Shown here: piece by piece, positions 7,262-54,548 of the stretch
Numbering within the stretch: position 1 is the first letter of the stretch
Layout: the number at the start of each line of letters is the position of its first letter
From: Dimorphilus gyrociliatus
Taxonomy: Eukaryota; Animalia; Annelida
DNA: 64,000 bases
NCBI GenBank assembly: GCA_904063045.1
Contig: CAJFCJ010000011.1
Coordinates: 1,178,001-1,242,000 of the forward strand
Direction: 5' to 3'
Position numbers and translations under genes: made by a program
The notes under the pieces: model-generated
Database searches by the model: none
The model's input: only the letters and a program-made list of their open reading frames with translations
Told to the model about the DNA's origin: nothing

Positions 7262-7307
<46 letters not shown>

Positions 7308-10279: not shown

Positions 10280-12585
10280 CTAGATTCCTCGACAAGATAA
10301 ACAACAAACATTTCGTACTGCATTACAGAAATTAGCCCCATAATATTTTGCGCCTCCAGCACAATTCACCAAAGCAAATACTTGACCATTTTTGTTTCTT
10401 AAATAGAAATATCGATTTGTATCTGTACATGAAGATGATCCTCCGCTTGTAGTTGTTGTTGCAGCAGTTGTTGTAGCTCTTGTTGTTGTTGTTGGAGCTG
10501 CAGTAGTGGTAGTAGTTGTGGTAGTTCTAGTTGTTGTTGTTGGAGCTACAGTTGTAGTAGTAGTTGTTGTCGTTGCTGTAGTGGTTGCAGCTGTTGTTGA
10601 TGCTGGCCCTTCGTCGCCATTGCAATTTCTCCCTTCAAATCCTACAACACATTCGCAAGCATATTCTGAATTTCCGTACTGGCGACAGACACCTCCGTTC
10701 TTGCATGGATTTGGCTCACATGGAGAAGAAGATTCGGCGATGTTATTGTTTGAAGCTTTCAAACCTTTCATACTACAAGATCGGCAACAAGTTGAAAAGA
10801 AATTTCCAAAACAAACATGAGGCATTTCTCCAGCAAGTTCTCCGCATGATGTAAAAGTTCTAACATAACTTCCATAGTTGACTGGAACATTCACCGGGCT
10901 ATCGTTACAGTTCGATCCAACTGATCTATCCAGAACAGAACCGGATGTACATTCAGTATTGTGAGACTCTCTTTTGTAATGAGCCAATTGACTTTCCGCA
11001 ACGCATCGAGCTTTTAAGCAAACTTTTCCACTACCACATGAACTTCCGTCTTCTGCGCCGGGCTCTTCGTATTTACAAAAGTTTCCCACACGACAAACTA
11101 AACGGTGACAAACGTCGTCCTTTTCAGAAGCCGAACATCCGCGATCATTGGCAACGGCGTCATTTCCAAATCTCAATTTGCATTGCTCAGTCAAAGAGTA
11201 CTTTTCGCCAGCATAAGCTGAATCTTTCAGAATGTCATCGCTGTTAAATGCGCCGTGTCCGCAAACCTTGTTCATCAGACACACTCTCGGGAAGCCATTT
11301 TGCGAATTTCCGGTGATTGTGTTATAGATTGAGTTGATGGAACATTGACTAAGAACAAAGGCATTCTTTAGTTGACTGACTGTGTAATAAGTAAGTGTTG
11401 GAGTCATGACATTCTGAACACTGGCTGCGCAGGCTGTGTTTGGGCCAGAGCCATCGTGGGGAGAGCCAAGATTATGTCCCAATTCATGAGCGGCAGTCTT
11501 CCACGAGTCTAAACCAAGATCTTCGTTGATGGAGATACCTCTTCTTGAGCATACACCTCCAACTGGAGCGAATCCAATTGTGCTGTATCCGGCACCGTAG
11601 ATATCCTTCTTTGTCCATACAAAAGTATGATCCCAAGACATCCAATCTTCGCCACCAGTGTTTTCGGTATTGTCCATCCATTTAGAGATTTCGGAAAGTG
11701 ACGTTGTTGCATTAATAACTTGTCTTCCTTCGTGATCAGGCATATTCAGTGGAGCTGGTCCATCAGTAAAGGGACATTCGCCTCTGTTTCTGAAGATGAT
11801 GAACTTTTTCACAAACAACGACATCATGAATCTTGGATCGTTGATTCTTCTGTAGACCATGTCAATTCCGTTCATGATTTGACTGTAGTAGTATCTAATG
11901 TTTTTAACAGTATCATCTTGTCCATTTGTTACGGAAGACTGGAGGAAATAGTTCCAGACTGTATAGTCAACGAAAACGGCAGATTCTATATGATAATGAG
12001 GTTTGGAGATTGATCTTTTAACTCTACTTTCCAAATCATCAATGGTGACCATTTCGGTTTGGGCGTCGAACGCTTGAGCTTGTGGACCGGGAACACCAAC
12101 AACGTGCTCATCCTCTCCGCCATTTTGTTTTGGAGCAATAGAGACTTCCAAACCTTCATTTTCAAATTTTCCTTCGATAAATCTTCTAACTCTTCCGTTT
12201 TCTACTTTTTCAGTTACCATAACAGCAGCACCAGTGTTTAAATCTTGATAGGCTTGAACACCTTCCAAATATCCCTGAGCATCTTCGCCGCCGGCAAAGG
12301 AGATTTTCATGTTGGGATTAATGTTGGTATTTCTCTTTAGTCTAAGTTGGAGTGTATTCTTTTCAAGAGGAACATTTACATGAATCTCATGTTCTTCGCC
12401 AACAGATCGACGAACCCTTCTGAAATTTTCCAATTTAACAGTTCTTTCCTCTGAAATACAAAAGTAAACTCAATTTCAATATGAGTGTTCAAGTTTTAAG
12501 TGCGAAACTTAATGATAGAGTGATACAAACGAATTGGAACTGCAGCAATAAAGCCAATCAGGCATAAAGCAACAAAATATTTCAT
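10280..12585 (-). CDS. ADAMTS-like secreted zinc metalloprotease (M12B), copy 1, 741 aa
   Basis: Exon 1 12585-12531 (signal peptide MKYFVALCLIGFIAAVPI), 80-nt phase-1 intron 12530-12451, exon 2 12450-10280. Furin sites RVRR and RVKR, HELGHNLGSPHD zinc motif, Met-turn NVMTP, ADAMTS-type Cys-rich domain, PLAC-like (C-D..CC-SC), EGF, Thr-rich linker, second PLAC-like. No TSP1 repeat. Confidence 0.93.
10284..12558. repeat. Left arm of a ~2.28-kb near-perfect inverted repeat (partner 52270-54544)
   Basis: Matching positions always sum to 64828 at every anchor checked (no indels); ORF-track proteins are identical; three synonymous substitutions found by spot comparison. Confidence 0.95.
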
Positions 12586-12632
12586 GTTTCAGTCTAGAAG
12601 TTAGATGCTTCTGTGTTTTTTGAGTTTTCAGA

Positions 12633-12640
12633 CTTTTATA
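12633..12640 (-). promoter_or_regulatory. Putative TATA box of ADAMTS-like copy 1
   Basis: TATAAAAG ~50 nt upstream of the ATG, at an equivalent position to TATAAAAG in copy 2. Confidence 0.55.
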
Positions 12641-13022
12641 TATGAGTTAGTTTTTAATTAAAATCTGTACTAAACAGCTGATCATACTGTAGTGTTGTAT
12701 ATTAAAAATATGAGCGAATAAATTAGGTAAAATCTATATATTTGCGTTGCTAAATTTGAATAAAACCTAATTATAATCAAGACCTTTAACTGTTTTTATA
12801 AGTCATCATATTGATATCTGTAGAAATGTTTGCGTTAGAAAGTTAGTTGTCTAAAAATGTCTTTAATTTGTTGAGCCTATAACAATAAGTGAACATGCTT
12901 GATATGTATCTGAGTAAAAAAGAAGGAATACAATTGATAGTCAAAATTGGTTTATTAAAAAATATATAAGTGAGTTTTATTAAACAATTAATTCCCTTAT
13001 CTTTGATTAGATATCTTTTCTA

Positions 13023-14913
13023 TCAATTGAAAATCCTTCTGAAAAATTTTCGTAGCCTATGTTTTAACTTTCTCGATTCAGTTGTAGTTTGCCAATGTTC
13101 ACGAATGATATTGTTTAAATTATTAAATTCGTCAGCAAAGTTTTCTTTTTGTACAGTCCCTCCAGCCGACTGAAAAATTGTATAATTATCTAATTAATTA
13201 ACGTTATGAAATAATATATTTAATGATTTATCGAATGGAAAATTATGTTAATACTTCTTCAAGTTCAATTCCAAAGAGTACCCTTCTTAAGAATTCGGCA
13301 CAGTGAGAATCTTGAGCACTTCCATTTTTTTGAAAAATCATTCTACAAACTTCCAACTTTTCCAAATTCTTTGTTTGTTTTAATGAAATAAATGAAATTA
13401 TTCATTTTATTAAAAGAATTTTTAATAAAATTTACCGTTCGAAAGAACAGAAAGTATTTTAAAAATACTTTCATTATACAACAATCATATAAATCTGGAT
13501 GAAAGAATGAATCGTAACATATTTTGAAGATAGTACGCTTAATCTTCATATCTCGACAAAAGTGTTCAACTCTTAAGAAATGATTGATAATATCAACAAA
13601 CGTCTCATTGTAATTAGAATAATCGTAGTATATTCTTCCTTTGTTTTCTTTAAGAATATCAACAATTATCTGTATAATATATACATTATATATAATTATT
13701 ATCAAACATAGATTAAACTATATATAAACCTCAAAATATTTAATACATTCCCATTCGTCTAATAGTGAAATTTCTCTTTCGGAAAAGAATCTAAAGTACG
13801 AATAAAGGAATTTCTTAACATCCTCCACTTCAAGATATTCAATCATTAGCTTATATTTATCAACGTAAAGTGTTGAATATTTCTTAAATTAATAAAGAAA
13901 AACAAGTTGACTTAATTATGGAGTATTAATTTTAAGCTTACATTCTCAACTAATAAACTAGTTGAATGACTCGATGCAATATCCTCCAAATCTTGCATAT
14001 ATTGTCTATCGCATTCAACATCCAAATAATTTAGTTTTGGATGTCTCGAGATAAAATTCCTATTAATAGAAATATATAGATTATTAATAATTTTGAATTA
14101 TTAACATATAATTAAAAGAGTATACTCAATCAAGTCCAATTTGGCAAATGTATTTCGGAAATGAGCGTAATACATTAAATTAGGCCAAGTAGCTACTTTA
14201 AAAATCCTTTCAGTATCATAATCGGGAAAGGAAAGAGCAAGAGAAAATCTCAATTCTAAATGTTCAAGAAGTTTTAGTTTTTCAAGACAGATAATCGTAT
14301 GAGGTAAAACTAAATTTTTAGTATTTTTAATACGAAGACGTTTGAGTTTAAGTAAATTTTTCAATGGGAAAAAATTCGTTTCCGGACAAATTAAATCTAA
14401 TTCTTCCAGATTTATCAATTCAATACATAAATTTCCAAGAATTTCAATTTCCGAAAATTTATATTCCAGTTTAAGTGAGATTAAATTTTTGAATTTTGTC
14501 CATTTAATTGGATTAATACGGGGATTAACAGGTAAATTTCGTTTAAGGAATGAAGCTTCTGTTAATCTTAATTTCTTCAGATTTTGTTTATTTATTACAG
14601 AGAATATCTTATTGAATTGATGAAATTCTAAATTCCTTATCTCGCATGATTCTAGATAGGGATTGGTTAAAAACATTAGATCTACATCGTTCCTAATCCG
14701 AAATCCATTGATCTTAACATTCTTAATGTTTAACTTATATCTTAAACAGAAATTAAGATAATAAGGACTTATTCCAGTCTCTTCATTATCCAAATAACAA
14801 AGTAATTGTTCAACAATAGAGGGTGGTAATTTAACAACGCCAGTCCTTCGTTGGAAAAGGCGATCGCGGCTTTCCGCTATCTTTTGAAAGCATAATTCTT
14901 TTAAAGTAAACAT
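13023..14913 (-). CDS. ZYG-11/ZER1-like BC-box LRR protein (paralog a, subtype I)
   Basis: N-terminal TLKELCFQKI (BC box) plus LPPSIVEQLL (Cul2 box), LRRs, WPNL..FISRHPKL; six coding exons traced in frame to KLKHRLRKFFRRIFN*; 5'UTR intron 14919-15012. Confidence 0.82.
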
Positions 14914-15317
14914 TTAGTCTGTAAGAAAACATTTGTCCTATTAATCTACGTTGTTAACAACAATAGATAAAAAGGTAAAATTTAACTAAATTATAATGTA
15001 AATCAAACTTACATCTTTCAAATAATTTTCAAAGTGGATCGCTCCGTATTAGATTCAAACAAATTGAAAAATAAACCTTGATTTATGCCAAGTAAGAACT
15101 GGTAAAAGGGAACAGAGTCTCCACTTAAAGGAAGGTGTTAAGTAATATTAAGAAAAAATAGAACCTACTCAACAGTCTAGTATTAAATCTTGAATTTATG
15201 ACGTAGAACATTGACGTAATATTTAAGCCAAAACTGCTTGTTGATTTTGCTTGTTATTACCGTTAAAAAAGGTTGGATAGGTTTAGAATTAGGTTGTAGA
15301 ATGAGATAGATACTAAT

Positions 15318-17470
15318 ATGTTTGGGAAACTGTGTTTATTCATATTTATTACATTCCTATTCGGTTTGTTTATATTAATAATAGAATTGTCCTATTTTTG
15401 GTTTATCTATCTAAACTAGTTATTAAATTTATATAGATCTGACAGTATCTGATGATCTAAGATTATATATAGATGGACCAAGTGAATTGTCGGAAAGCGA
15501 TAATAGTGTAAAATATTTTGTGTATAGGCTTACCGGAACGGGAAGTTGCACGTAAGCTAATTAATGCATTAAACTTTCTTAATAATATCATTTTATTAAA
15601 TTAGTTATTTCTTATTAGACGAAACGTTTCTTTATCAAATTCTGTAAGCGTCAAAGGGAATTTATTACAAGTGTTTAATTCTTCTCAAGTTGATGTTTCA
15701 TTTACTTTGATTATCACCGATAACGATATTAAGGAGCCCGATGACGAAATAACGTTCTTTCTAGATTGCATTGACGATTCCAATGGTCTACCAATTAAAT
15801 TCGAAAAACGTATTAAGATAAAAGATGACGATAGTAAGTAAACTATTCCTTCTATTGATATTTTCTCTTTATCTTTAAAATGACCTAATTTTAGCTCATC
15901 CATATAAATCTTCATTTCTTATGCAAAATTTCCTGTTAAATGTCTTATACGAAGGAAGATTGGAAGCCTTATATCTATATACTTTGAGAGGAATGGCTAA
16001 TTGCAAGTAAACTTTGAATAAAAATATAAAAGAGACTAAGTTGAAAAAAACACTATTAATATTTATCTCTTCTTGTCTTTTTCGTTTATTCTCTTTCAGT
16101 ATAAAATCATCAAATACATCTCGGTTAGAGGTAATTGGTAACTCGGAAAAGTTTCTTATGGCTAATTTAATATCTTATGTTATGCTTTACGCTGTTGAGA
16201 ATAGTAATATTGAAAATGATCAAACTGAGAGAATTTTCATTGACTGCCTCGATAAAAATACAAATAGACGAAGCTTTTATCAACATGAAATAACAATTAT
16301 TGATAACGATGGTAATGTTTATCATTAATTAATTACAGTAATTAATTAATTAATCAAATTTTAATTTATATCTTTTTTTAGGTGAAAATATTACAAAACC
16401 TATTAAATTTGGTTTACTCAGTTTGGAAGAAGTTAATGAGGATGAAGATATTGCTATTTTTGTCACTCCCCATTCAGGTTCAGGAGATTGTTTGTAAGTT
16501 ATTACGAATTGAATAGTTTGTTGACCTTATGTATTTAATAAATTTCAGAATAAGTTTAAGCGAAAACGAAATAGGAGAACTTACTGGTCCAAAGAATTTC
16601 TTCCTGGATGCTAATAAACGATGTACATTTATTTTTAAGCCGAAGAAGAATTTTAGGATTAAAGGTGATAGAAGAGTTGATATTTGTTTGACATGTACAA
16701 ATAGAATTTCGAAACGTGTTGATTATTCAAAGAAAAATATTTTAATTAGAGAAACTAGCCAAGATGATCCTTTTGACGTTATAAAAGCGACTGGAGATCC
16801 TCATTTTACACAAATTGTATCAGATGAATTAGCCGAATCAAAGAAATACGTTTGCTACGATATAGCCGGTAAAGCTGGCGATATTATAAATATCTTTCAA
16901 AAAACATTTAACGGTGATATATCGGTTTTGGGTGTATTAAAAGATGATTATTATATGCACAAGATATCTATATCATTTCTTAGTAAGAATTTATCAACAA
17001 CTACCGATGAGATCTATTTAAGCGATGGTAGAATTTTGAATTGGGAACAATTGGAATCTTATAAATCGTTTCCTTTCGGTAAACATTTTATAACATTCGC
17101 AAAGAATTATATTAAAATATTAGTTGAAAGTGACGAAGTAAACGATCCTTTCCTGAGTATCATTCTAAAAAGGTCTCATCATCCGATAACTGGCTATTAT
17201 TTAGACGTTATTATTCACGGTATAAATGGAAATTATCATGGAATGGATGGACTTATTGGTAGAATTGGAAATAATAAATTCAAATTTTACGAACCAGTAC
17301 AAAAAACGAATAATATTTGGAATAACGAGTCTAATCCTTCAAAAGTAGCCGTTGAAATTAATGGTTTACTAAAACCTGGAAGAATTGAAAAGAGAGAGGG
17401 ATTCGATTGTTGGCTCTTGAACACAAAAGATTTATTATATCCATATTCATTGAGTAGTTTTATATTCTAA
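15318..17470 (+). CDS. Secreted 3x Calx-beta-like + ITIH heavy-chain C-terminal domain protein (gene A)
   Basis: Signal exon MFGKLCLFIFITFLF; repeats with DNDIKEPDDEITF and IKDDD motifs; GDPHF at 16793-16807 followed by CYDIAG..G.LKDDYYMH..GLIGRIG..CWLL, matching the ITI_HC_C pattern. Confidence 0.82.
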
Positions 17471-17869
17471 ATAATTTTCATAATTCATTTCTTTTCGTAC
17501 TAATGTTAGAAAAAGAAATAAAACAACAACAACTCTAATAATAATAATAATAAATCAATAACTGATTAGTCTTTGCCTCAAGTTCAAATAGTAAATGATT
17601 TAATCGTTCCTAGTGCATTTATTTAAAAAAAAAAACAATTGAAAGTGACACGTGACTAGAAAGAAATATGGCTAGGAGTTAATGTTTTTGTTGAGTACTT
17701 ATCTACCATAAATAATATTTTATCCCTCTACATTTTAGAAAGAGGTTATTGAAGGTGAAAGTACAGTGTCTTATTTTGTAACCAATAGTGATTAGAAGAT
17801 AGGATAAGTCCTTTGAAAAGAAATTTAAATATTTTATATTGATATTTAAAGTCTTTAGGACTCTTTAAC

Positions 17870-20309
17870 ATGCTACTTGGAAAGAATTTACTCTTCGATA
17901 TTATCGTTATTGTTTATTCGTCTATTCGTAAATATCTCTCTCTCTCTCTCTCTCATATAGTTTCTAGGTCAAATAATTAAGTTAAACTACTTTAAACAAT
18001 AGACGTATCTCATGCCTCTTTCCTTCTACGTTTGGAGTCATTTAATCAAATGTACGAAAATGTTAGGGAGGTTATGGTAGCCTCATCAGTACAAGGAAGC
18101 GCTACGTGCAAGTAAGAAACTACCAACAGTTGATTATTATAAATTTAGATTCTGAACTATATATTGCGTTTTAGTATTCACTCGTCTAATCCTCAACGTC
18201 TACAAATTTACATGGGAGCAACAATAGAATTTGTACCTAATAAATCAGTAAATGTCATTTTGGAAGGAGTAGACAATAGCATCCTAGACGGAGAAGAACT
18301 CGTAACAATATTTTTTGTTTGCGTTGATAAAGAAACTGCTGAAAGTAGTACTTATTCTATATCAATGACGATTTTAGATAACGAAAGTAAGCATAAATAA
18401 TCTATGTTTCCTTTACAATATGTCTACTTTTTAAAGTCAATAAACTTCTACCTGGAAAAATCGAAATGGTTGCAACAACTACTGTTGAAGAGGGAAGTCC
18501 ATTCGAAATATCAGTATTTCGTGTACAAGGGGATTCTCAATGCCGGTTAATTAACTTCTTCAATATCAAACTAATGTACCAAATATATTCATTTATTTAT
18601 TTAAAAAAAAGGGCTTTTGTTTCCTCCACTTCCGATTTAACATTGAAAGATAATACGTATTTTTCTATGACGGATCAAGCTTTTAAGAAAACATTAAACT
18701 TTAACGTTATAAGCGATGGAAAAGCGGAAGGAAATGAACTTGTTACAATCACAGTTAGATGCCGTAACGTTCTTGGTGGGACGTATATTGATCACGTTGT
18801 TGGCATTGTCATAAAAGACTCGACAATTATTCCATTTGCCTTGCACATTATAGCTTTTAATTATATAAAGGAAGGTAAGATAGGGCATGTTGAGACTTAT
18901 GCTCAAGGAAGTGGATACTGCTCCGTTACATCTTCATATCCTCAACGATTGGAGATTATACAAGGGAAATCTTTAATATTCGACAATAATCTGATAGAAA
19001 TAGGCGTTTTATTCGAAGCAAAGAAAAATAATCAAGTAGATGAAAATCAAATGGTTTTTCTAAATTTTCACTGTACAGATAGCAATACAAATGAAAAAAC
19101 AAACTCTTACGTATCTTTAACAATTATAGACGCTGACGGTTTGGATTATTTTTATTATCCTTCTTTTTTAGATAAAATCAGTAGAGCTAACAATTAATTG
19201 ACTATAGTAACAGAAGAACTAGAGCCAGGTAGGTTAGAAATTCATACGACTACCGATGTAAGAGAAGGAGAGAGTTTCACGGTTCGAATACGTTGGCAAG
19301 ATTGGGAAAACGTTGGGAAAAAAGTCTTTTGCCAGTAAATCATAAAATACTCTTAATAACTAGATTTTCTTTTTACGATACTTACTTTATTCCTAATAGA
19401 GCTATCATATCCCGTCCATTCCAGCTTGTTTTACGTAATCCGTCTCATTTTGCCATAGGTTACGATGATCCTGAAATATATTTGGATTTCGAGGCATTAA
19501 ATGATAAAATTGTGGAAATAGATGAAACTCTAGACATAAATATACGATGCAGAGAAAGTTCAACTGTTCCATATATCAACCACATATTTTCCCTTATTAT
19601 TAGAGATTCAGATATGCAATCATACGGAGATCCGCACTTTATACAAACTGTTCTAGATGAGACTGAACACGATAAAAAAGCAATTTGTTATGATATGTTT
19701 GGAAAGCCAAATGATATAATCTACCTTTATGGTCAAGTTACAAATTATCAAAAAATATTTATCTACGGCCAGCTTAAAGATGATTATTATATGCACGTTG
19801 TAAAAGTTGTAACAAAGTTTGGTAATATAACGTCAAATGTTCACAATACTATATTACCAAGTGGTAAAACTCTTGGTTGGATTGATAGTGACAAGAAGAT
19901 TGTATCGTTCGTTGACAAATTGATTATAATTCAAAGGAAAAACATTATTGAAATTAGAATACCAAATAATATATTCCGCATAGGATTCTTAACGATTACG
20001 ATTCAAAGATCAAATCATTTAGAATACGCTTTAAATGTATATATTGATAGACAAATGAACGAAAATTATAATAAAATCGACGGAATCCTCGGTAGAGTTG
20101 GTAAGAGTAATTTCAAGTTCAATAAACCTATTCAAAATTCCAAAAATTTAAAATCTAATCAACGAGGATCAATAGAAATAAATGGAAAGTTAACTACTGG
20201 AATAATAATAAAAAGAGAAAAAGTTAATTGTTGGTTATTAAATATAAAAGATGCTATTTATCCTTCACATTTAAAGGAGTTTCTATTCAAGGAGAACAAT
20301 TTTATTTAG
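17870..20309 (+). CDS. Secreted 4x Calx-beta-like + ITIH C-terminal domain protein (gene B)
   Basis: Signal exon MLLGKNLLFDIIVIVYSSI (donor GTAAAT); ORFs 18164, 18466 and 19293 link through short introns; GDPHF at 19626-19640. Confidence 0.78.
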
Positions 20310-23300
20310 AGATTTATTATCCTTTATAGAGTATTTTAATAGATTATTGAAATTATTTAATTAATTTAATTAACAAATTAATTAATTCATTAATAACAAC
20401 TAATGTATTGTTTTTTTTCATTTTCATCAGTTTATAGGCAAATATAATTTCAATTTATTTATTACTTAAGTTCTATTATTTCCATATGAATATCTATGCA
20501 GTATATAAATTAATAGGATGGCCTTCTGTAAGATCTTTTGTAAAATCGTTATAAATTTGCTCATCAACTTCGTGATTTATAAAGCAACTCTTTGTCTTTG
20601 GCCAACTGTACAGGAGAAAACTACTTTGGTGATTCTTAAGATAATTGATTTGGTTTTAACAGTATCAAATAATACATTTACGGCGAAGATGGCAACTAAC
20701 AAATATCGATTTATCTTCATAATTTATTTTAATATACCAATTACAGAAATACTGATTATAATGTTAAGATGGAATCGTGAATCACTTAAGTGTTATTAAT
20801 GTCTTTAAAGTCTTCTTTCTTATTAAACGCAAAAAAGTGACCGTCTTAACTAGTTTTTACTGAGCTCTTAATACGTTTTTTGGTGAGTAGAGAGTTGTTT
20901 GTTCGTTCATTGAACCTAGTAGGATTTCATTTCGGCACGATTATTATAGAATGTTTTTCATGTAGTTCTTACAAGTAAATTGAAAAGAATAAGAATCGAG
21001 CATTTACAATGTAAAACTCTATTGAATGTTATATGAACAGTACACGAATAAAGGATTGCCTGTCCCAATGAAACAGAATAGAATATTGGTCGCATTCTAT
21101 ACTCAAAACATGACAAAATATTTTAAATATAATCTTTTAAGATAGAGTTTGTATTTGATTAAAGAAAATTGATATAAAACAGCCTAAATAAGACGGATTC
21201 CATTAAAAAAGCAAAATAAAAAGTTAATTGTAACTTCTATCTATCTAAAGGTAGAATATTTGGACCAAATTATAAAAGATTGTTAGCTTTCTTCAACCTT
21301 TTAAAGCTGATTTTTTTTCTTTTTTTTTTCGCAACCTTTTTCATTAAATCCTTATTTGCTAATGACATACTTTTTCCATAAGTCAAAAGGATTGTATCTA
21401 CCTGCCATGAAGAGATAGTCCTTATTATTCTTCGAAAAAAATAGCTTGCAGTTATCTATTACCGGAATTTTCTATAATCTTAGGGAATAATCATGGAAAT
21501 CTTTTGTTTTCTTCTTACGCATTTTATATAGAGAGAATAGCTATAGACTTTGATTATATATTTTCCAGTTTTCGATGGCAATTATACACTGTGGCATTTG
21601 TAGATGAATGTAATTCTATCTGCATTAGAAATCTGCAATATTAGTTGTGTATACTAAAAAAAATACTTTTTGTCTTCTTATAATCATTAAATTAAAGAAG
21701 ATTTATTTGGAGAATAGTAATATATTCCCCCTACGTATGACAGAACAATGGAAAAAATATTAATATAACTAGAATATCAAGTAAAAAATTTCTTTTTATA
21801 AGATGTCAAATAATCCTTGTAAGCGTGACTTCTTTAGAGCTCACATGTACGGATGCTTTCCCTCTTCTGACTAAACGCTCATCCTTTCTTTTTTTCCTTT
21901 TTACCAAGAAATAATCAATTATTTCTTTCTTACACGGATTGTCTCAAAAACAAAATATAACATATCAGAAATGACAGCAAATACAGTCAATGAAAAGATA
22001 ACTCCAAGTAAATAATATAAACGAAGATAACTAATAGTAGAGAATATACAATTTTCCTCAATTAAGAAATTAATATATGAAGACATCAAACAACATTAAA
22101 AAGCTCTAAATAACATTGCAGGTGCAATCGCATATTTGGTTAACTTCTTTTATACGATAAAAAGAAATCTTCGGCAAATTTATACGAAAAATTGAAATAG
22201 GATCTTCTCCACTGGATATACTTTTGTAAAAATTTATAAAGTAATGGATTGGCTTTTAACTGGTTTTAAATGGAAAATATTAAAAATATTAGTATTACCT
22301 TGTTTTTTATGTTAAACGTATCAGAACATAAAAAATCAGTTAATGCGATTACTCTTTTATATTTTATTTAAAACTCTAAATTAGACAGATAACGAAAGAT
22401 TTAGATTTGTTTTGTACTCTTTTGAGAAAGTACAATTTTTATATATGCAATACTATGAAATCTGTATTAACTATAGATATTAAATTAAAAGTATTAATGA
22501 TTTATACGTGTTCAGCTGTTTGGAGTAAAGCTTAAAATGAGGAAGGAAAAAAAGAAAGAAAGAAAGAAAGAAAGGAAGAGATAAGTAATTACTTATATAA
22601 TGTTTTATTTTATAGTATTATTTTAAGTCTGTAAGACGCTAATTCTAGAATATCAGTTGTAAAACTCCGAATATGTTCCAGAAAAGGGATACGAAGAGTT
22701 CAACTGTATATTCTAGCAATAGAGTACACAATAAATATTGTACTTATAAAACATCTTTAAAAAAAAAACAGCTTGGCGAGAATTAATTGGATGAAAAGAA
22801 GTCTAAATTATACAACTAAATACGAACTTCCTCTATTTTATAGGATTTCTTGGACATTTTTAATTTTCTTCAGGTCTTGTTTTGGGAAAAGGACCAACAA
22901 GTTAATGCAAATTTTGTTGTGATTGTTTAAATTGAATTGCTTCTATATTTATTGTGCACTTTGGTGACCTTACTTTTAATGAAGCCACAGTTATGGTACA
23001 TTACTTACAAAATTTGTATGGGTTATTTATTATTATGTGTTGGTTGATACAGTAAAATTTCAATAGATGGCGTTGTTTTTTTTATTAATTTTCTATGTAT
23101 TTGTAGTTTAAAAAGTGAGATAGACATATAGAGTGAGAGAGAGAGAGAGAGAGAGACAGAGAGAGAGGAAGAGAAAAAGAAAACTAAATCGAGAGACTGC
23201 GCATGGATGTACGCATGCATTTAAATGAAAGAGAGAGAAGCAGATATAGAAGTAGAGGCAGAGACAAAACAAACGGAGACAACGAAAGAGCGGCTAATAT

Positions 23301-23427
23301 AAAAAATACGATTTAATATAGAGCACAGTCAAAAGTAAGTATTTAATGCAATACATCAGTACGAGACAAAAAGCTCTTCCTTAAATCCTTCAGAGAATAT
23401 TAAGTTATTTCTATTGAAAAAATAATA

Positions 23428-30386: not shown

Positions 30387-30449
30387 TGGAAAATGGCAAA
30401 TTCATAATTTTTAGGTGCTAATTATTTATTATATTTATAGAAATTACTT

Positions 30450-40312: not shown

Positions 40313-41615
40313 ATTTTTTTTTTAATTTTCGTTTATTGTAGATTAAATAAACTTGTTTCTTGAACGCTTTTCTTGTAGTTGTTGTTGCTTCTATTACTTA
40401 CTCACATATATATATATATCTATATATGTATATATATAGCTATAGACGAAAGAAAATATGTCTATTTATAGTTTGAAATGCAGGATTGAGTTTTACTCTG
40501 GATAAAATTGAGTAAGATGTTCTTATACCTGGTTTTTTTTTTTTAAAAAAACAAATGTATTGATAAATATCTATATTGGAATAAAGGCAATATTTAAGCA
40601 TTAAAGGTTCTAAATGCTATGGTCTATTTCAATTGTAAAAATAGTATAAGTATGTTAAACTAATCAGCATTCATGCAAATTCTATTGTTTTTTAACATTG
40701 AATTGTATAGTAAGAGACAAAGACGCATTGAATCTTCTAAAGGATAACTTTATTCTTCCATCCACAGCAACAGTAGCCTAAGTTAGGCTCCTTGATTGAC
40801 TATTATGTGATAAAACAGAGATTTAATGGACTTGAAATGAATCACGTATTTAGTAAATGTTCGAAATAAAAACCAAAAAAAAATTTGCAAAAAGCGTCAC
40901 ATTTAGTTAAAATTACTGTATAGCCATAAAATTAAAGACACCTTTTTCCCTTTTTGATACGTGTTTGAACTAAACGAAATAGTTTTAGTCATTCTTATAC
41001 TGCATAAAGAACTTGTGGATAATAATCATTTTGAAAAACAAGATCATTCAACTATGTAAGCCTTCAATTTCTTCCCGAGCTTTCTACTTTAGATAGAATA
41101 TAACTTTAATCCAATCAGGATTAAAATCCGTATATAGTTGTTATAAAAAATGGGAACTCAATAATTTTATTTTATCTTTTATTGAAGTTGAATATTCAAA
41201 GAATATAAATGTTCATTTCTTTCTTTTTTTCTGTTTTTACATGAAATATATACAGTATAATGTTATAAAAAGGCTAATAGATCACCTTGAGATAAATATA
41301 TTCTCTCTTTATAGCACAAGAGAAATATACTTGTCACGACTCGTTTAATCTCCCGCTAGAAAACATATTCATTCACTGTCAAAAATATTTGTAAGGCCAA
41401 CTGGTCTTATGTTAAAAAGACTATGAAAAGATTGGCTCAAATTCTGGACAAATTTTTGCTACGAAACAATAAATGTTATATTATATTATAACACATTGTA
41501 ACAGATATTTCCGAATATAAGTTTTATAGAATTGTAATAAATAAAAACAAGTTATATTGTTGACTTTTACTTAAAAAGTACCCACTTTTTCTTTTAAAAC
41601 AATACAGTTTAAGAT

Positions 41616-43467: not shown

Positions 43468-43497
43468 AAGTCACTAGTTCACAAATATATTCTTTTT

Positions 43498-43677
43498 TCT
43501 ATATAATAGCATATAAAAGATTTCGTCCGTCCGCCAGTCCGTAGAGCGAAGTAGTCCAATTGTTCAAAAATAAGCAAATGAATAGTGGCTCTACATCGAT
43601 TCTACACTAGAATACGTCCACCGGTTAATCTGGTTATATAAATATTCAAGTTAGATATGGTAAAAACTGATATCTAG
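43498..43677 (+). mobile_element. Possible short non-autonomous Helitron-like remnant
   Basis: Begins TCTATATAATAGCATATAAAAGATTTCGTCCGTCCG, resembling the TC + TATA-rich + GTCC-microsatellite 5' ends of invertebrate Helitrons; CTAG at 43607-43610 and 43674-43677; 3' hairpin weak. Confidence 0.3.
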
Positions 43678-44684
43678 TATAAATTTAATAAAATGTATGA
43701 CAAATTTTTGCATATTGTTATATTAACTCTTTTATAAAAGAACAAAAGATTTTATGTGGGCGATTTCCTGGGAATTCATTGGCGTATAAAAGCATACAAT
43801 ATTTAACTGTCCCATACACTTTTAAGTACCAAATCTGTCTATATCAAATACAACAAGAATAAAATCTATTAGTTAAGATATTAACATAATATACGCAATA
43901 TGTATAATTTAATGGATATAATCTTTAATTTTTGGCTTTTATCAATTTGGGACTATCTCAATACATTTAGTTCAATTGTAATCCCACTCAATGTTATACC
44001 AAAGTAGAACTATAGACTATTTTAGTTGTTTGAGAAAAAGTTAGTATAATACTATAATAGCTATCCTTAACTATTTCTCTTCATATTCAAGTTACCAGAT
44101 AAAAAGAAAGATTGTAATAAAAAAGTTCAAAACTGGCGACTTCAATTTTCGAATTGTTGTCCGAAATCTTTTAAGAATTTCTTATTAAAGAAGAAGAAGA
44201 GTTGCGTAAATTACAAGTACTTAAACTGATAATATTACTAATACTTATATTATCATATAATAGGAATTGTACACTAGTCTTCCTACAATAGATGGCTTTT
44301 TTTTGTAAATATAACAAAATTCTATTACACTCTTCTTATTCTCTTAATCTTTTTATTGAAATAGAATGTAATGGATGAAATTATTAAGTTATTATTTTAT
44401 TTTCCTATATTTAGAATAGAATGAATAATATTTAATTTTATTCAGTGCATAGTTAATTATGTAGATTAAGTTTTTTTTATTTTTTGCATCTAAATACGGA
44501 TCAAAAAAAAAACAAAGAAAAACTATAGTAATTTATTGTCTTTCAGTGTAAAATTAAAAGGTAAAGAGGCGACAGAAGAGAGAGAGAGAGAGAGAGAGAT
44601 GGAAAAGTAATAAAGGAGTTTTGTTTTCTTCTCTTCTTTTCAGTTTTTTTTTAATAAAAAAAGAAAAAAGTAAAAACTCTTTTT

Positions 44685-45787
44685 TCAACTTCTACTACTT
44701 GTTACGGCTTCATTTTTAGTAGGCGTATCTGTTGTTGTTTCTATACCAACGCGATTTATGCGCCGTCTTAACGTAGCCCACAGTTTTTGAACTTGTCGCC
44801 GAAAATGATTATTGTATAGAACGAATATAAAAAAATTCGCCGACGCATTAATTGATATAGCAGCAACGGCGAATCCATAAATATATGAGTAAGGTCGTTC
44901 ACATTCCGTTATAGCATCTTTTGACAAAACTGCTACCAGTATTCTTCTTATTCCGTTAATCAATTGAGTTATAATATAGATAAGATTAACAATGATCATG
45001 GATTTTGTTAATCCCGATTTTTTACTTCTTGTTGTTGTTTTTAATCTCTATAAAGAAGGTTTATTGAAAAATTAGTAAATTTTTAAATCAATATCTATAT
45101 TTATAGGATTTTTAGGTAAACAACCTTAATTATTAACCCTGTCATAGACGTTACTGTTATTATTGGTGTAGCAAGTTGAATGACCCAATATTGAACGGTA
45201 ACATAAGTAGCATAATATGATTTTTTCTTCATATCTGATGGAGAGACAATCCAATGACCTTTTTCTTTTACGTATTCTGGTTCGTATTCCCAACTTCTAG
45301 TTATATTTATAGAATAGGCAAAGACAAATATAAATGCTTGAGCAATTAAAGTTGTTCTTCTTGTGATTTTCGAAGAATGATGAGGTAAACATACTGCAAT
45401 ATATCTTTCAAAAGTTATAATTATCATATGCCAACTGCTAGCCATTAAAGATCCCGTTAGTATTGGAGAAAAAACCTTTTGACTTACGCTAATATAACCA
45501 TACGTGTCAAGAGGAGACATTCTCTGATTAGCCAACTTAGATGAGTATCTAAACAAGTCAATATAGGATAGAACAACTGAATGTGATAGTAAAAAAAGAG
45601 TATCCGCTATCTCCAGACCAATTAACATACAAGTTGTGCTATTTTTCACTTTATCAAGAAATAATGCCACAATAGCAATAATATTCACGCTAATACCAAT
45701 AAGATTGACTAAACTTAACGATATACCAACAACTATAAAACCAAATATTTCGCAGCTATGCCATTCATCCGTCAAGTTTGCTGCCAT
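44685..45787 (-). CDS. Class A peptide GPCR, FMRFamide-receptor-like, 341 aa
   Basis: Two exons (45787-45125, 45047-44685; 77-nt phase-0 intron); seven hydrophobic segments, ITFERYIAVC (DRY-like), INASANFFIF in TM7. Confidence 0.85.
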
Positions 45788-48700
45788 ATCTCCTTCTCCT
45801 TTTCTCCTTCCTTCACAAGTCTTTTTTTATACCCCACTCCTTTTTCTATTTTTCTCCCTTGCGCGTGCGCTCTCTATCTATCTCTATCTTTTTCTCTATA
45901 TTAGCCTCTTTGCGTTTCTTCACCTTTCTCAATAGAGATGCTCCCTTTTTTTTCACATGCAACTGTATAATTTAACCCTGTGACGTCATAGGAACAAACT
46001 AAATAGCTTATAATCATAGTCTTTTTATTAGAAAACTTATTAAAACAACGAACATGTATGTTTTAGAAGAGTTATCATTGTAATATCTTTGTTCTTGATG
46101 TATTTGAAGTATAAATACATTAGAGATAATTAGACACATTAGTCAATTAATTTAGTCAAGTTTTTAGTTAGATAAAGAGGACCTTTTATTTTATTTTTCA
46201 ATTGTATTATGTTCTGTAGACTTCAATATCTCATTTATTTATTACATATTTCATAAATACAAATAGGTGAAGGATGATATTTTATCGATCATTTATGATA
46301 GTCTATTCTTCTTTATTCTATGCTACTAACCTTTTCTTATTTTCCATATTAATAATAGGCTTAAGTTAATTATTTTTCTATAGTTCAATTCATCAAGAGA
46401 TAAGATTTGAGGGAAATTATATTTAAGAACTAATAAAGTACGTGATATGTTTCATCTCCAATAGAATAGCGATGCGAAGAGTAGCAAGTAGCTTAATTAA
46501 CGAGTGTAGTAAGAGTTTGTTTCTAATGCAAACGTCATCAAAGTTAATAAATAAAGCTATATACTGTATATCTAATTAGTATTCATTAGTATATAAATTT
46601 ATAGTTATGCTTTCAGTAGTCGTTCATTCATAAAGCGATATAAACAATTGATACAAAGGAAGCATTGAAGTAAATTAGAGGGTAAAGCTATTTTAATGAA
46701 AATTTAATGGCATTTCACTTCAAGTATGATTTATTTAAGTAATATTATATATATAAATAATACAAACTAAACCTCAATAATTGTATTATTCTTTATTCTA
46801 GGAAGGTTTCTCATATTACTTAAGAACAGAGAAGAAGCTCTTTGTTTAATTAATAATAATAAAAATGTGAATAAAGATGAGAGGTAACATTTGAAATCAT
46901 GCATAAAAATCTCTATAATCCCTCTATTTCCCTTACTCTTGATATCTTACTTTAATTAGTTCCAATTAATTAATTGCCTAATTTAATATGCTTTCTTTTA
47001 TTTTATCTATTACAATAAAAAATTCTCATGATGTAAGGGAAAATAATTCTATTGGTCGTATCTATTCGCTTCGCATTGCCAATTTTTTCTGCTGACTTTT
47101 CAATACTGTAGTCCCAGTTTCTATGCTAATATTTCTTTTTTAACATATTACACCTATTGCACCAATTATCGTATTCTATTATTTATGGATGATTACGTGA
47201 GTACTAACGAAGTACTGAATTACTGTATATAATGCTTTATCCGTTTCATAGATGACTTGAATTAGAAGCTCTCTCTTTCTCTCTCTGTCTCTTTAGTGTT
47301 TTTATCTTTACTTCAAATAGTATTTATTATAGAATATCTTCAAAATAGTAAAGATAATATTATTAAAATAAAATTACCTAATATGACCCTTTTTTCTTTA
47401 TTTACCTTAATAACAAAGTCATTTTTTCACATACCTTAACGCGTCTTTTTTTGCAGGGTGTTTCCTGTAAAAAATTATCTGATGAATCTATAAATATTAT
47501 CCAAAAAACGACAAACACGTAGCCAGAAGTTTGTAAACAGTATTTATTGCTGCTATATCAAAATGTAGGAGTGAGTATGAGTGAAAATAAACAGGGAAAT
47601 GGTAATGTTCCATTAAAAGGAATGATTAATTATATACATACATTAAATCATCAGTAGTATAAAAGGGAAATTTTAGAATATAATAAAAAGAATCGAGAGT
47701 AGCGTCTAAAATCTCTCTCCCTTTTCAGATATGAGATAGCACCTTAGCCTAAGCAGATAACATAAATAAATAGAAGAAAATTATAAAAGAGATTTCTCTA
47801 GTTGTTTAATTTTGTTATTTTATCATGTATTTCTATGTCGTTTTATCCAAAGTTGGGTAGTTGGGTAGGTTGTACTTGGTAAATAAGTTAATATATAAAG
47901 GAATCAACTTTGTCACTTGAATAATTATTCATACATATTTAATATTTTTAATGTATTCCTCTTTATTTTAATTATTTTCTATATGTTTCTAGTTAAAAGG
48001 TGTCAATATTTCCATTGTTAAATATAATTAACCTAACTTGGGCAAATAGGCATTCATTAGCATAGGGTGTACTGTACTCAGAGTTTCTCTATTATTTTAA
48101 AGCATCTTAGTTTCTATCACTATAGTATTCTGTGATATACTAGACGATTTATCGATTTAGGTGATCAATTTATTGATAGTTTGTTCCGAGTGGACAAAGC
48201 CGAGTATTTATAAATTAACTATGAAAGACTTGAATTACTTCATCTTAAAGGCAATTATTACAGTTTCTAGTTAATTTTTTAATTTATATCAAAAAATGCT
48301 GACTAGTGATTTTTCTTCTTAAATAATAAAATTATTCTTTTATCGTCTATAAAAACTTGTGGTAAAAGGTCAAATATCTTTACAAATTGTCAATTTCTTT
48401 TCATATCTTCACGGTTATAGTGCAAAAAAATAAAAGATGATCTTAACCGAAAAAGGAACGTAGCGCAAAATAAACTTATCATTGGAAAGTCCTTTTAGAC
48501 GCCCTCTATGCAAGGTTATCATCACTTTTAAAGTCAATGATCAACAGAACTCTTCACTTAAATAATGAAGCTTTGAAAGTAAACTTTCCATTGGAGACCT
48601 CAAATAGATAAACAGAAAAGTATCGATTGACATATTATAAAGGGATAGGATATAGAAGAGAAGATAGAATACCAGAATATCTTAAAATAACTAACCTTTC

Positions 48701-51700
48701 AAGTGAAGTCAAAAAAATTCCCGGACATTTGCTCTTTGTCATTTCATTTGTGTATATCTACTAAATGATACATTTATTAAATATCCAACTGCATATTTTT
48801 CCAATATACATAAATGTGTTAGAAAATTATTTAACAAAAAAGGTTCTCCTTGCTGATTGGTTGAATTCTATCTATTTTCAATTAGACGCGTTATAATTCA
48901 ATTTTCCTACCTAGAATATGTAACTAGTTATAAATAGCTCTATATTAGAACTAACTATATCAAATATACCACAGTAAGATTTTCTTTTTCTATTGAAAAC
49001 GATACACATCATCTACTAAACAATTGTTAGATAATGAAATTTAACGCCATCTATGTTTACCCTAATCCAGAGCTGCAATATTTACTAGACGTTCGAAGAA
49101 AATGCCCTCGATTCGATTTACTAAATAATCATACTATTTAATTAAATTTAAATACCATAATAGTTCTTATAATGATAAAGAAACATGAAGTAAAAAGCTC
49201 TTTAGTAGTTATACACTGTACGTATATACAGTAAAAATGGAATATTGTATACTGTATGATACTGTATACAATATACAATTGCACAGTATCCGTTTTAACT
49301 GTATATACTGTCTATACATTATAATATATTTTGATAGGAAATGGTAATATTTTAGTAGTAACTATATAAAGGAATAGAAAACACTTTGCCTCTATTTTCT
49401 TCCTTTTTCTTTAAATTAGATACAGTTTAATAATTAATTAGATAACAAATTTTTTCCCTCTAGCTATATTCATAAGTTTGACTGATAACGATTAATCTTT
49501 ATTTATTAATGATCATCTTGTAGAATATTGACGAAATTAATCTATTTAAAGATGAAAAAGAAATGTTTCTATATACATTTAAGCTTAAGAAATTGGTATG
49601 AAAGCGATTGTTGAAATGAAATTGCTCGTTAAGAGCTTTTATTAAATAGTAACATTATTCTATTTTAGTTTAATACATTAGCTATACTGTATAAAATAAT
49701 TTAAGTGTACAATACGTACAATACTCCTTGGTTGGTGAAAATACGTCAAAAATAACATTTAGTGGCATCTTAAAGAAGATACAAATATATATACGAAATC
49801 TATATAGAAGAAGGTTATTAAACTTTTACCTAAATACAGTAAACTAGCCTGATTCATAGAAATATAATAAATACTTTCTTAGGTTAATTTCTTAGGAAAA
49901 CGCTCTTTACTACTTTGAATAGAGGTTTTATAAGGCAAAAATACAATATACAACTTTGTAAATAGATATATTAATTCCTAGAATGAGAATTCTTAATTAT
50001 TGAATAAGATATTACGATGGTTTTGTTTATTAAGTCAAACTATTGAAAACTGTTTGTAACTGTGTAGTTAGCTAATTGATTATTGTATCTGGAATAGATA
50101 GTAAAATTTTAGAATAAGACTTTAGGATAGCGATAGAGTAGGGAGTTGAGAATGTCAGATTGTCTTTATCAAAAATGAGTAGTTAGTATCTCATATTTCA
50201 AAAATTATTTTGTAAAAGGAAACCTATCCTTTTTAGAAAAAGAATCTATTAATTCCTGTTCTAAAAGGAAATGTCTCCTTTTCAATGATAAGAGTGAAGC
50301 GCTCCAAGTTGTCACACGTCTAAAATAACTCTAAGGATTGCTTATAAAACTATTTAGAAAGGTGTTCTGCAATCGTTTCAAATTTAATTATAATAGGAAA
50401 TAACACCATTTTTAAAACTAGTTCAAGATAATAAATACAATAAATAAAACTTTATTTGCATTAAAATTGCCAAATACTCTTTAACCACCTACCTACCCAT
50501 TTTAATTCAACAAGAATAACACCAAAACGTGGGCGCTACCTACGCATAAGGTGATCCTTAAAGAAAAGAATACTACTTCAATGTAACTTTTCGTTAGAAG
50601 TAGCTGAAAAAGAAAAAAAATAATAAAGTGTTAACTTCTATAATATTATATAATTTAAGAGTAATTTTGTTTTTCTTTCTTTTACACGAAATAGAAGAAA
50701 GAGAAGAACAATTGAAAAAAATCAATTTTCAGTACATTTTAAATAGTCTTTATAATATATAATTATGGTTATTCATATTTTCTTCTATATGGGTATATTC
50801 CTCCATTAAAATTGAAATGTAATTTGAGGGTAAGAAACCTAAAATAACAAGTACCCTTTCTACCCTTAGCTTCTTTATATTTTTAGACTAGACAGCGGCA
50901 TCTTCTTTAATTAATAGAAAGATATTTTTTTACTTGGGTTCTTTATAAGCATCATTCAGCCTACATAAACATTTAATGTCTCTGTAGATGGGATAGTTAC
51001 GGATAGATTATTTGGGATATTGAAAATGGAAGAATTGTACAAAGATGTTATTGTTTCATTTTTGTTCAATAAAATAAGAGAGAAATTTGTGTTTGCTATA
51101 TGACATTTATCATATAATTCTATTTATAGTTTAATTAAATAAAGGATTACTTTTATTCTATATAATAAAAAACTTACCTTAAATATTTGAGTTTAATACG
51201 ATTTCGTGGAAATAGTCTTAAGAATGAAAATCGATTTATCAATAATACTATTATGCCATATACAAAATAAATATCTTTACAATAATACTTCATTCTTATT
51301 GGTTAACCAATAAACAGGAAGATTTAAAAAATATAGTAAACTTTTAGGGCTAGTATCCTCCAATATAAATTAGATTTCTTAATGATAATTAGATAAATTC
51401 TCTATATCAATATTTCATAAATGTTTGATTTATAAACTTTCCAGGGGATGACTATTTAAACAGCTAATTTCAGCGATATTTGTTCAATTGAACAGCTTTG
51501 AGGCAATATTTTCAAATCTATTCAAGTATCTTCAGTTAATCATGTATTGTTCAATCTTTCCAAATTGTTAATTAGTACTCGAGTGGGACAGCTCCTCTAG
51601 ACATTCATTTTTCCATGAATGCAGCTTATATACATTAATTAATTATTTATTAGCTCTTGTTTCTTTATTATTCTTTAAGTTATCATACTCTGTTGACCTT

Positions 51701-52185
51701 GCGAGTTTTAGATAATAATCCTGTTGATTAACAAATCTTCTAATAATCTTTCACACAAAGTACTATAAGTCACTTTAATCAACAGCAACTTCTTTACAAT
51801 AATCTTTATTTAAAATAAAAGAAGGACTATTCTTTAAAACATCAAATTTCCTCGCTATTGTTAATCAATAATACCACCTTCACTTAATAAATAAACTTTA
51901 AAAATAAAATCTGATTGAACATGTGTTTCATTCAGCTTACTGTCAGAAAATCAACTACAAATAAACATGCAGTGTATCATCAATTTACAAATCGATATAA
52001 TAGTATTAAATCTATTAGGGAGAACGTTAAAAAACGTATATTTAATTAAACAAATGTCTAATATTAAAAACCAACTTATCCAAAACAATAAAAGTTAAAT
52101 TCTAAAATCAGCTAACTGCTTCAACTGCAATTTTTTAAATTATTTGATCAGGTGCTTGTTTAAAAATTTCAATTAAAAACTTTCG

Positions 52186-52193
52186 TATAAAAG
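52186..52193 (+). promoter_or_regulatory. Putative TATA box of ADAMTS-like copy 2
   Basis: TATAAAAG ~50 nt upstream of the ATG at 52243. Confidence 0.55.
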
Positions 52194-52242
52194 GCCAAAA
52201 ATATTTTAGAGAGACAGAAGCAATCTTCTTCTCCAATTTAAA

Positions 52243-54548
52243 ATGAAGTGTTTTATTTCATTGTTGTTTATTGGCTTTATTGCTGCAGTTCCAATTCGTT
52301 TGTATCACTCTATCATTAAGTTTCGCACTTAAAACTTGAACACTCATATTGAAATTGAGTTTACTTTTGTATTTCAGAGGAAAGAACTGTTAAATTGGAA
52401 AATTTCAGAAGGGTTCGTCGATCTGTTGGCGAAGAACATGAGATTCATGTAAATGTTCCTCTTGAAAAGAATACACTCCAACTTAGACTAAAGAGAAATA
52501 CCAACATTAATCCCAACATGAAAATCTCCTTTGCCGGCGGCGAAGATGCTCAGGGATATTTGGAAGGTGTTCAAGCCTATCAAGATTTAAACACTGGTGC
52601 TGCTGTTATGGTAACTGAAAAAGTAGAAAACGGAAGAGTTAGAAGATTTATCGAAGGAAAATTTGAAAATGAAGGTTTGGAAGTCTCTATTGCTCCAAAA
52701 CAAAATGGCGGAGAGGATGAGCACGTTGTTGGTGTTCCCGGTCCACAAGCTCAAGCGTTCGACGCCCAAACCGAAATGGTCACCATTGATGATTTGGAAA
52801 GTAGAGTTAAAAGATCAATCTCCAAACCTCATTATCATATAGAATCTGCCGTTTTCGTTGACTATACAGTCTGGAACTATTTCCTCCAGTCTTCCGTAAC
52901 AAATGGACAAGATGATACTGTTAAAAACATTAGATACTACTACAGTCAAATCATGAACGGAATTGACATGGTCTACAGAAGAATCAACGATCCAAGATTC
53001 ATGATGTCGTTGTTTGTGAAAAAGTTCATCATCTTCAGAAACAGAGGCGAATGTCCCTTTACTGATGGACCAGCTCCACTGAATATGCCTGATCACGAAG
53101 GAAGACAAGTTATTAATGCAACAACGTCACTTTCCGAAATCTCTAAATGGATGGACAATACCGAAAACACTGGTGGCGAAGATTGGATGTCTTGGGATCA
53201 TACTTTTGTATGGACAAAGAAGGATATCTACGGTGCCGGATACAGCACAATTGGATTCGCTCCAGTTGGAGGTGTATGCTCAAGAAGAGGTATCTCCATC
53301 AACGAAGATCTTGGTTTAGACTCGTGGAAGACTGCCGCTCATGAATTGGGACATAATCTTGGCTCTCCCCACGATGGCTCTGGCCCAAACACAGCCTGCG
53401 CAGCCAGTGTTCAGAATGTCATGACTCCAACACTTACTTATTACACAGTCAGTCAACTAAAGAATGCCTTTGTTCTTAGTCAATGTTCCATCAACTCAAT
53501 CTATAACACAATCACCGGAAATTCGCAAAATGGCTTCCCGAGAGTGTGTCTGATGAACAAGGTTTGCGGACACGGCGCATTTAACAGCGATGACATTCTG
53601 AAAGATTCAGCTTATGCTGGCGAAAAGTACTCTTTGACTGAGCAATGCAAATTGAGATTTGGAAATGACGCCGTTGCCAATGATCGCGGATGTTCGGCTT
53701 CTGAAAAGGACGACGTTTGTCACCGTTTAGTTTGTCGTGTGGGAAACTTTTGTAAATACGAAGAGCCCGGCGCAGAAGACGGAAGTTCATGTGGTAGTGG
53801 AAAAGTTTGCTTAAAAGCTCGATGCGTTGCGGAAAGTCAATTGGCTCATTACAAAAGAGAGTCTCACAATACTGAATGCACATCCGGTTCTGTTCTGGAT
53901 AGATCAGTTGGATCGAACTGTAACGATAGCCCGGTGAATGTTCCAGTCAACTATGGAAGTTATGTTAGAACTTTTACATCATGCGGAGAACTTGCTGGAG
54001 AAATGCCTCATGTTTGTTTTGGAAATTTCTTTTCAACTTGTTGCCGATCTTGTAGTATGAAAGGTTTGAAAGCTTCAAACAATAACATCGCCGAATCTTC
54101 TTCTCCATGTGAGCCAAATCCATGCAAGAACGGAGGTGTATGTCGCCAGTACGGAAATTCAGAATATGCTTGCGAATGTGTTGTAGGATTTGAAGGGAGA
54201 AATTGCAATGGCGACGAAGGACCAGCATCAACAACAGCTGCAACCACTACAGCAACGACAACAACTACTACTACAACTGTAGCTCCAACAACAACAACTA
54301 GAACTACCACAACTACTACCACTACTGCAGCTCCAACAACAACAACAAGAGCTACAACAACTGCTGCAACAACAACTACAAGCGGAGGATCATCTTCATG
54401 TACAGATACAAATCGATATTTCTATTTAAGAAACAAAAATGGTCAAGTATTTGCTTTGGTGAATTGTGCTGGAGGCGCAAAATATTATGGGGCTAATTTC
54501 TGTAATGCAGTACGAAATGTTTGTTGTTTATCTTGTCGAGGAATTTAA
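52243..54548 (+). CDS. ADAMTS-like secreted zinc metalloprotease (M12B), copy 2, 741 aa
   Basis: Exon 1 52243-52297 (MKCFISLLFIGFIAAVPI), intron 52298-52377, exon 2 52378-54548; same domains as copy 1. Confidence 0.93.
52270..54544. repeat. Right arm of the ~2.28-kb inverted repeat (partner 10284-12558)
   Basis: Reverse complement of the left arm, including the 80-nt intron. Confidence 0.95.

Follow-up and report, generated by a model that had tools for sequence, protein, structure and literature searches.

The inverted Hsp70Aa/Ab pair of Drosophila and the palindrome arms of the human Y chromosome are kept near-identical by intrachromosomal gene conversion, and both supply one protein in multi-copy dosage. 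In the Y palindromes, homogenisation spans tens to hundreds of kilobases and takes in the non-coding arms. The subject of this report is a pair of inverted protease genes, copies A and B, in the annelid Dimorphilus gyrociliatus. They are located in a 64,000-nucleotide stretch of contig C11 (GenBank assembly GCA_904063045.1, CAJFCJ010000011.1; C11:1178001-1242000), hereafter the window. The closest described systems are found in Caenorhabditis elegans. The reading frame and intron of col-12/col-13 are 99.5% identical between diverged flanks, and the pair is accepted as a case of conversion (reviewed in PMC3966223). For the inverted hsp16 modules, interlocus conversion was inferred from discordant divergence along the locus (PMC3966223).

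Copies A and B share the main property of the C. elegans pairs: frame and intron are 99.5-100% identical and the flanks are diverged, in direct and head-to-head pairs alike. They differ in spacing, as the C. elegans pairs are 0.4-1.8 kb apart, whereas 39.6 kb and a dozen or more genes separate the arms here. Concerted evolution of col-12/col-13 is confirmed by orthologs in other species, whereas A and B are known from one species. Unlike the homogenised arms of the Y palindromes, the tract shared by A and B is confined to one 2.3-kb gene body. A and B are very probably old head-to-head paralogs of a lineage-specific, secreted M12B protease family, whose gene bodies were made identical by one or more interlocus conversion events.

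Each gene is composed of two coding exons, the first of 55 nt and the second with a 717-aa open frame, separated by a GT..AG intron of 80 nt. Each model has 741 codons. The exons were used separately in domain and homology searches and were joined only to check frame and length. The splice model is supported because an annotated, intronless paralog on contig C26 (P0002) reads through the equivalent junction. Where the C11 genes and their relatives on contig C34 have a 70-80-nt intron, P0002 has none, and its protein is continuous across the junction. The features of the two copies are as follows.

10284-12558, minus strand: near-identical tract of copy A, 2275 bp in ungapped comparison.
52270-54544, plus strand: near-identical tract of copy B, 2275 bp in ungapped comparison.
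12586-12680, minus strand: copy A core promoter and 5' untranslated region (UTR), with CAGCTG (-95), AATTAAAAACT (-74), TATAAAAG (-55), and ACAGAAGCA (-29).
12531-12585, minus strand: copy A exon 1, coding part, ATG at 12585-12583; signal peptide MKYFVALCL-IGFIAAVPI, whose first 27 nt are outside the tract.
12451-12530, minus strand: copy A intron, 80 nt, GT..AG, identical to that of copy B.
10280-12450, minus strand: copy A exon 2 (12450-10283) and stop codon TAG (10282-10280), encoding a putative propeptide with RVKR, an M12B catalytic domain with HELGHNLGSPHD, ADAMTS_CR_2, EGF, a Thr-rich stalk, and a C-terminal six-cysteine module.
10236-10241, minus strand: copy A AATAAA signal, 38 nt past the stop, in a 3'UTR that is unalignable with that of copy B.
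52149-52242, plus strand: copy B core promoter and 5'UTR, with CAGGTG (-94), AATTAAAAACT (-72), TATAAAAG (-57), and ACAGAAGCA (-29).
52243-52297, plus strand: copy B exon 1, coding part, ATG starting at 52243; signal peptide MKCFISLLF-IGFIAAVPI.
52298-52377, plus strand: copy B intron, 80 nt.
52378-54548, plus strand: copy B exon 2 (52378-54545) and stop codon TAA (54546-54548).
54596-54601, plus strand: copy B AATAAA signal, 47 nt past the stop.

A repeat finder returned a single long inverted repeat, whose arms (10281-12614 and 52214-54547) are separated by 39,599 nt. The arms were compared base by base without gaps, position p of arm A being paired with 64828 - p of arm B. From 10284-12558 (against 54544-52270), 2275 bp are colinear with no indels and three mismatches, an identity of 99.87%. 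A sequence-only reading of the window had described such a tract, intron included, with three synonymous changes in its 3' third, and the full arm alignment bears this out. The mismatches are at 10607/54221, 10688/54140, and 10949/53879, which correspond to gene positions 1636-1978 of 2306. All three are synonymous, and the 717-aa exon-2 translations are identical (dN, the nonsynonymous divergence, is 0; dS, the synonymous divergence, is 0.008). The neutral sites of the tract, 481 synonymous sites and the 80-nt intron, differ at 3 of about 561, and none of these differences is in the intron.

Both copies appear to be functional and under constraint because all three differences are synonymous (P = 0.011 under neutrality). 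The mismatches also lie together within the last 667 bp of the tract (clustering p ~0.025). This faintly hints that the 5' 1.6 kb was converted later than the 3' part, in more than one event.

The 5' edge of the tract is abrupt. In the first nine codons (12559-12585), 10 of 27 nt differ and 17 are identical, the same count that the sequence-only reading had given, and 21 of the 47 bases between the tract edge and 12605 differ. The tract starts together with a block, ATTGGC..., that directly follows the nine diverged codons and is conserved between the C11 and C34 groups; the first bases of tract and block coincide. Its 3' edge is just short of the last codon, where copy A ends in ATC TAG and copy B in ATT TAA, as had also been noted, and past it the 3'UTRs are unalignable. 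Beyond the arms, ungapped identity is ~25-35%, the chance level in DNA of 27% GC. The contrast between the tract and the first nine codons is strong (Fisher p = 2e-18), as is that between the neutral tract sites (3/561) and the alignable promoter (18/84; Fisher p = 2e-14). The 64-kb window contains no N.

Homology of the flanks was judged by z-scores of local alignments against shuffled sequences; identity in global alignments is uninformative here, as unrelated AT-rich DNA already reaches ~0.7. The 100 nt upstream of the two ATGs align locally over positions 1-90 with a score of 39, against 17 +/- 3 for shuffled sequences (z ~7, range 6.8-7.1). Within this alignment, 66 of 84 aligned bases are identical, with gaps in addition. 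The traces of flank homology that had been suspected are thus real 5' of the ATG, where they form part of a promoter layout common to the family. Neither the distal upstream region (-330 to -111) nor the regions 3' of the stops show A/B homology (z ~0). The proximal promoters of A and B are more alike (z = 6.8) than either is to its counterpart in a C34 gene (z up to 4.3). A genome search placed each 5' flank at a single site in the 78 Mb.

The promoter layout is present in all eight close family members. It is made up of an E-box at -89 to -95 (CAGCTG, CAGGTG, or another variant), (T)AATTA(A) at -65 to -75, TATAAAA at -53 to -57, and AGAAGC at about -23 to -29. Both A and B carry TATAAAAG and ACAGAAGCA upstream. 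The shared layout, at 12606-12680 and 52149-52222 of the window and at the matching place in the C34 genes, is a candidate for a cis-regulatory module of the protease family. Because these family-wide motifs are present at both loci, the loci were family members before their gene bodies became identical. Each locus was already a complete family gene with its own promoter, start codon, and signal-peptide start.

The genome that was searched comprises 77.9 Mb in 349 contigs. Exactly two copies, A and B, are found at 100% amino acid identity. Six more are located on contig C34, with 68-69% amino acid and ~72% nucleotide identity to A/B; dS between the groups is saturated (~2) and dN is 0.25. More distant copies are located on C26, C99, C60, and C67, and stop codons interrupt several fragments. 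The C34 copies are placed as follows.

C34:1-70000: six copies at ~8.5-10.8, 24.0-26.3, 27.4-29.7, 31.8-34.1, 42.0-44.3, and 50.6-52.9 kb, in a stretch that holds 643 N.

Pairwise homology in the C34 cluster is gene-length, at 2.26-2.37 kb and 90-99% nucleotide identity. It begins in or just before exon 1 and stops within a few bases of the stop codon, and its exact ends vary by pair; in the pair at 27 kb and 42 kb, for instance, it takes in the 3'UTR as well. In a four-gamete test, 326 of 595 informative-site pairs are incompatible, and the variable sites fall in blocks that support conflicting groupings. Incompatibilities are fewer among neighboring sites than under permutation (PHI-like p = 0.01). 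Such a mosaic is the signature of sequence exchange between copies, and it indicates that conversion is active in the cluster. One C34 pair is part of a 6.4-kb inverted segmental duplication (4531-10863 against 38136-31777) that is 98.8% identical, with the flank as similar as the gene. This is what a genuine recent duplication with its flanks looks like in this genome, and the A/B pair is unlike it.

Conversion is preferred for A and B because the near-identity of the tract is incompatible with the divergence of the homologous sequence right outside it. The earlier proposal of old paralogs homogenised by intrachromosomal conversion across ~40 kb is supported by this contrast between tract and flank, by the promoter layout, by the unique flanks, and by the C34 mosaic. 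As a mechanism, we infer homologous repair of a break in one copy, for which the inverted copy at 40 kb distance would have served as template. The converted tract would extend as far as useful homology permits, with its edges where conserved sequence gives way to diverged sequence. The outcome would be two genes with independent, similarly built core promoters and the same secreted proenzyme, the latter because the precursors differ only in the signal peptide (at five residues, all within positions 3-9). Doubled dosage, with purifying selection on both copies, would most likely follow.

The sequence-only reading had proposed one mature enzyme under two different promoters and signal peptides. 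The protein half of this stands, as the starts of the signal peptides differ and the rest is identical. The phrase "different promoters" was too strong, since the two promoters differ in sequence and share their motifs and spacing. Because of this sharing, co-regulation or dosage is likelier than distinct regulation, and the pair would more likely supply dosage.

Several points weigh against this account. In the classic proof of conversion, paralogs within a species are closer to each other than to their orthologs in another, and the comparison here covers two copies in one species. The data are assembled sequence, from which the self-correction of the PacBio reads and the 101-bp reads used in Pilon polishing may have eliminated a few real differences. 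The similarity of the promoters could be partly kept by selection on binding sites, and it therefore dates the duplication poorly.

Other candidates were rejected. A third copy acting as donor was discarded, as the genome holds no further copy above 69% amino acid identity. GC-biased conversion gave no usable signal: GC content at third codon positions is 0.32 for A/B and 0.33 for the C34 copies, against 0.15-0.29 for neighboring genes and 0.41 for the single-copy C26 paralog, and the intron is 29% GC. Exchange between C11 and C34 had been considered for a 31-nt block at the exon 1/intron junction, which is near-identical between the groups and at whose first base the tract starts, yet the block is no outlier, as conservation is just as high in other 30-nt windows. 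Between the C11 and C34 genes, the longest run of exact identity is 38 nt and falls within a conserved peptide motif. This run is identical in A/B and all six C34 copies, at +731 to +768 from the ATG (copy A ~11818-11855), over the peptide VYRRINDPRFMMS and against a background of ~72%. It could be a strongly constrained motif or a short inter-cluster exchange.

The assembly was made from PacBio RS II reads (PBcR, Quiver), with Pilon correction from 101-bp reads and HaploMerger2. It is improbable that PBcR self-correction, Quiver, or Pilon made two really different loci look too alike, even though 101-bp reads are not uniquely placeable inside a 2.3-kb near-identical repeat. Such steps blur only copies that differ by no more than a few per cent to begin with, and they could not produce a jump in identity from ~60% to 100% within one base. 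Differences of 1-6% among the six C34 copies and of 1.2% in the 6.4-kb duplication persist in the same assembly. In the window, three A/B differences survive, the sequence is gap-free, and both arms run into unique flanks. Even at a true divergence of 1-3%, the contrast with the flanks would still need conversion.

A further account, to which we give very little credence, is that the gene body alone, codon 10 to the stop, was duplicated very recently. The copy would have landed where no paralog resided and acquired a new promoter, start codon, and signal-peptide start. Dissimilar flanks alone cannot exclude a duplication restricted to the reading frame (Katju and Bergthorsson, on C. elegans, PMC3966223), and the edges of the tract nearly coincide with the coding sequence. 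The shared promoter layout argues against it. Both 5' ends carry the family-wide motifs and spacing, followed by an in-frame, homologous signal-peptide start (17 of 27 bases identical), and the promoters align at z ~7. It is very unlikely that the copied piece picked up a 5' end of this kind by chance, with the frame kept and the junction exactly at codon 10. Had the copy landed on a resident paralog, the event would amount to gene conversion.

Purifying selection alone, holding two old copies identical with no exchange, is refuted: it agrees with dN = 0 and with a constrained protein (dN/dS ~0.02-0.1 among C34 copies), but leaves unexplained an identical 80-nt intron and identity at 478 of ~481 synonymous sites where the nearest other paralogs have a dS of ~2.

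The exon-2 protein has Pfam matches above cut-offs to M12B reprolysin (Reprolysin_5, Reprolysin_2, Reprolysin), ADAMTS_CR_2 (PF17771; residues 409-478, E = 3.5e-13), and EGF. It contains the zinc motif HExxHxxGxxHD as HELGHNLGSPHD. A match to Pep_M12B_propep is weak and below cut-off (E = 0.016). An RVKR dibasic site, read from the translation immediately before the catalytic domain, is a candidate furin-type site. The Thr-rich stretch has a sub-threshold Mucin match. The nearest solved structures are the catalytic and disintegrin-like domains of ADAMTS-5, -1, and -4.

The genes had been called "ADAMTS-like". This is only loosely right because no thrombospondin type-1 repeat was detected: TSP_1 has no match at E <= 0.1 across the whole exon-2 protein. 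The 92-aa Cys-rich piece before the EGF domain likewise has no TSP_1 or other Pfam match at E <= 10. PLAC was not detected either, the last 44 aa having no Pfam match at E <= 10, and a six-cysteine pattern is visible there. In common with ADAMTS proteases, the protein has an M12B catalytic domain with HExxHxxGxxHD, followed by an ADAMTS_CR_2/disintegrin-like module, and, as read from the sequence, a putative propeptide with RVKR. It differs in having no thrombospondin type-1 repeat, spacer, or Pfam-detectable PLAC; their place is taken by an EGF domain, a Thr-rich mucin-like stalk, and a small six-cysteine C-terminal module. As read from its domains, the product is an ADAMTS-related secreted M12B zinc metalloprotease that lacks the defining thrombospondin repeat of ADAMTS.

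MIG-17-like metalloproteases are ADAMTS relatives without thrombospondin type-1 repeats. They resemble the present proteins in their M12B domain, disintegrin-like module, and absence of this repeat, and in a propeptide, which is putative here. A Haliotis "mig-17-like" protein is among the distant matches. The differences are the low identity (~26%) and the PLAC domain, which was undetected here. An EGF domain with a mucin stalk is not known as a feature of MIG-17.

A protein tree unites the D. gyrociliatus genes in a single clade, which a very long stem separates from the ADAMTS/MIG-17-like proteins of molluscs and brachiopods; A and B are identical tips. P0002, a D. gyrociliatus protein, corresponds to the C26 paralog (100% over 700 aa; C26:519619-524718), and its signal-peptide sequence is unrelated to those of the C11 and C34 genes. 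The sole close relative from outside this genome is P0001, a 477-aa protein fragment from a JGI metagenome, with 62% identity to A and 71-74% to the C34 proteins; the tree places it with A/B. It presumably comes from a related dinophilid and may serve as an outgroup for dating. Fragments with in-frame stops at C26:554849-556030 (two TGA), C136:42440-43742 (three TAA), and C38:107802-108556 (mixed) are probably pseudogenes of the same protease family. A protein search with the first 250 aa of exon 2 found no shorter or fragmentary relatives. The protein collection returned P0002 but neither the window proteins nor the C34 copies; the multi-copy genes may be absent from public annotation, perhaps masked as repeats.

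Both promoters face the spacer between the arms, which is described as follows.

12615-52213, no strand: spacer of 39.6 kb, with genes of a weak leucine-rich repeat (LRR) family and an unnamed four-copy family, the paralogs being only 30-50% identical in amino acid sequence.

Seven to eight copies of a ~270-aa family with weak LRR matches are present between 14101 and 45787 (at 14.1, 23.4, 25.9, 28.3, 31.6, 33.0, and 42.7 kb). Four copies of a multi-exon family without a Pfam match are located at 15.4-17.5 and 18.1-20.3 kb on the plus strand and at 35.1-37.1 and 38.2-40.2 kb on the minus strand. These partly mirror-ordered families may be the remains of an old palindromic duplication. One large old palindrome was rejected as a clock for A/B, as orientations and best matches are not cleanly mirrored.

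The genome paper (PMC7854359) makes no mention of gene conversion or of this protease family. The A/B pair is a clean new example of a known process and would not surprise specialists. It is a clean case of homology-limited gene conversion, with the 6.4-kb segmental duplication as an internal control in the same genome. Dating by divergence would wrongly make A/B a very young duplicate. Short reads separate the copies only through the first 27 coding bases and the UTRs. A crossover within the identical 2.3-kb arms is predicted to invert the 39.6-kb spacer and leave the products unchanged, so an inversion polymorphism is possible.

It is possible, though rather doubtful, that concerted evolution extends to the whole protease family, which has at least eight genes at two loci, and that conversion tracts are held to the coding sequence throughout. 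If true, ectopic conversion would probably be unusually frequent in D. gyrociliatus, an inbreeding species with a compact genome. The pair itself suggests that a secreted protease is under selection for dosage, in a genome that is otherwise noted for its reduced gene families.

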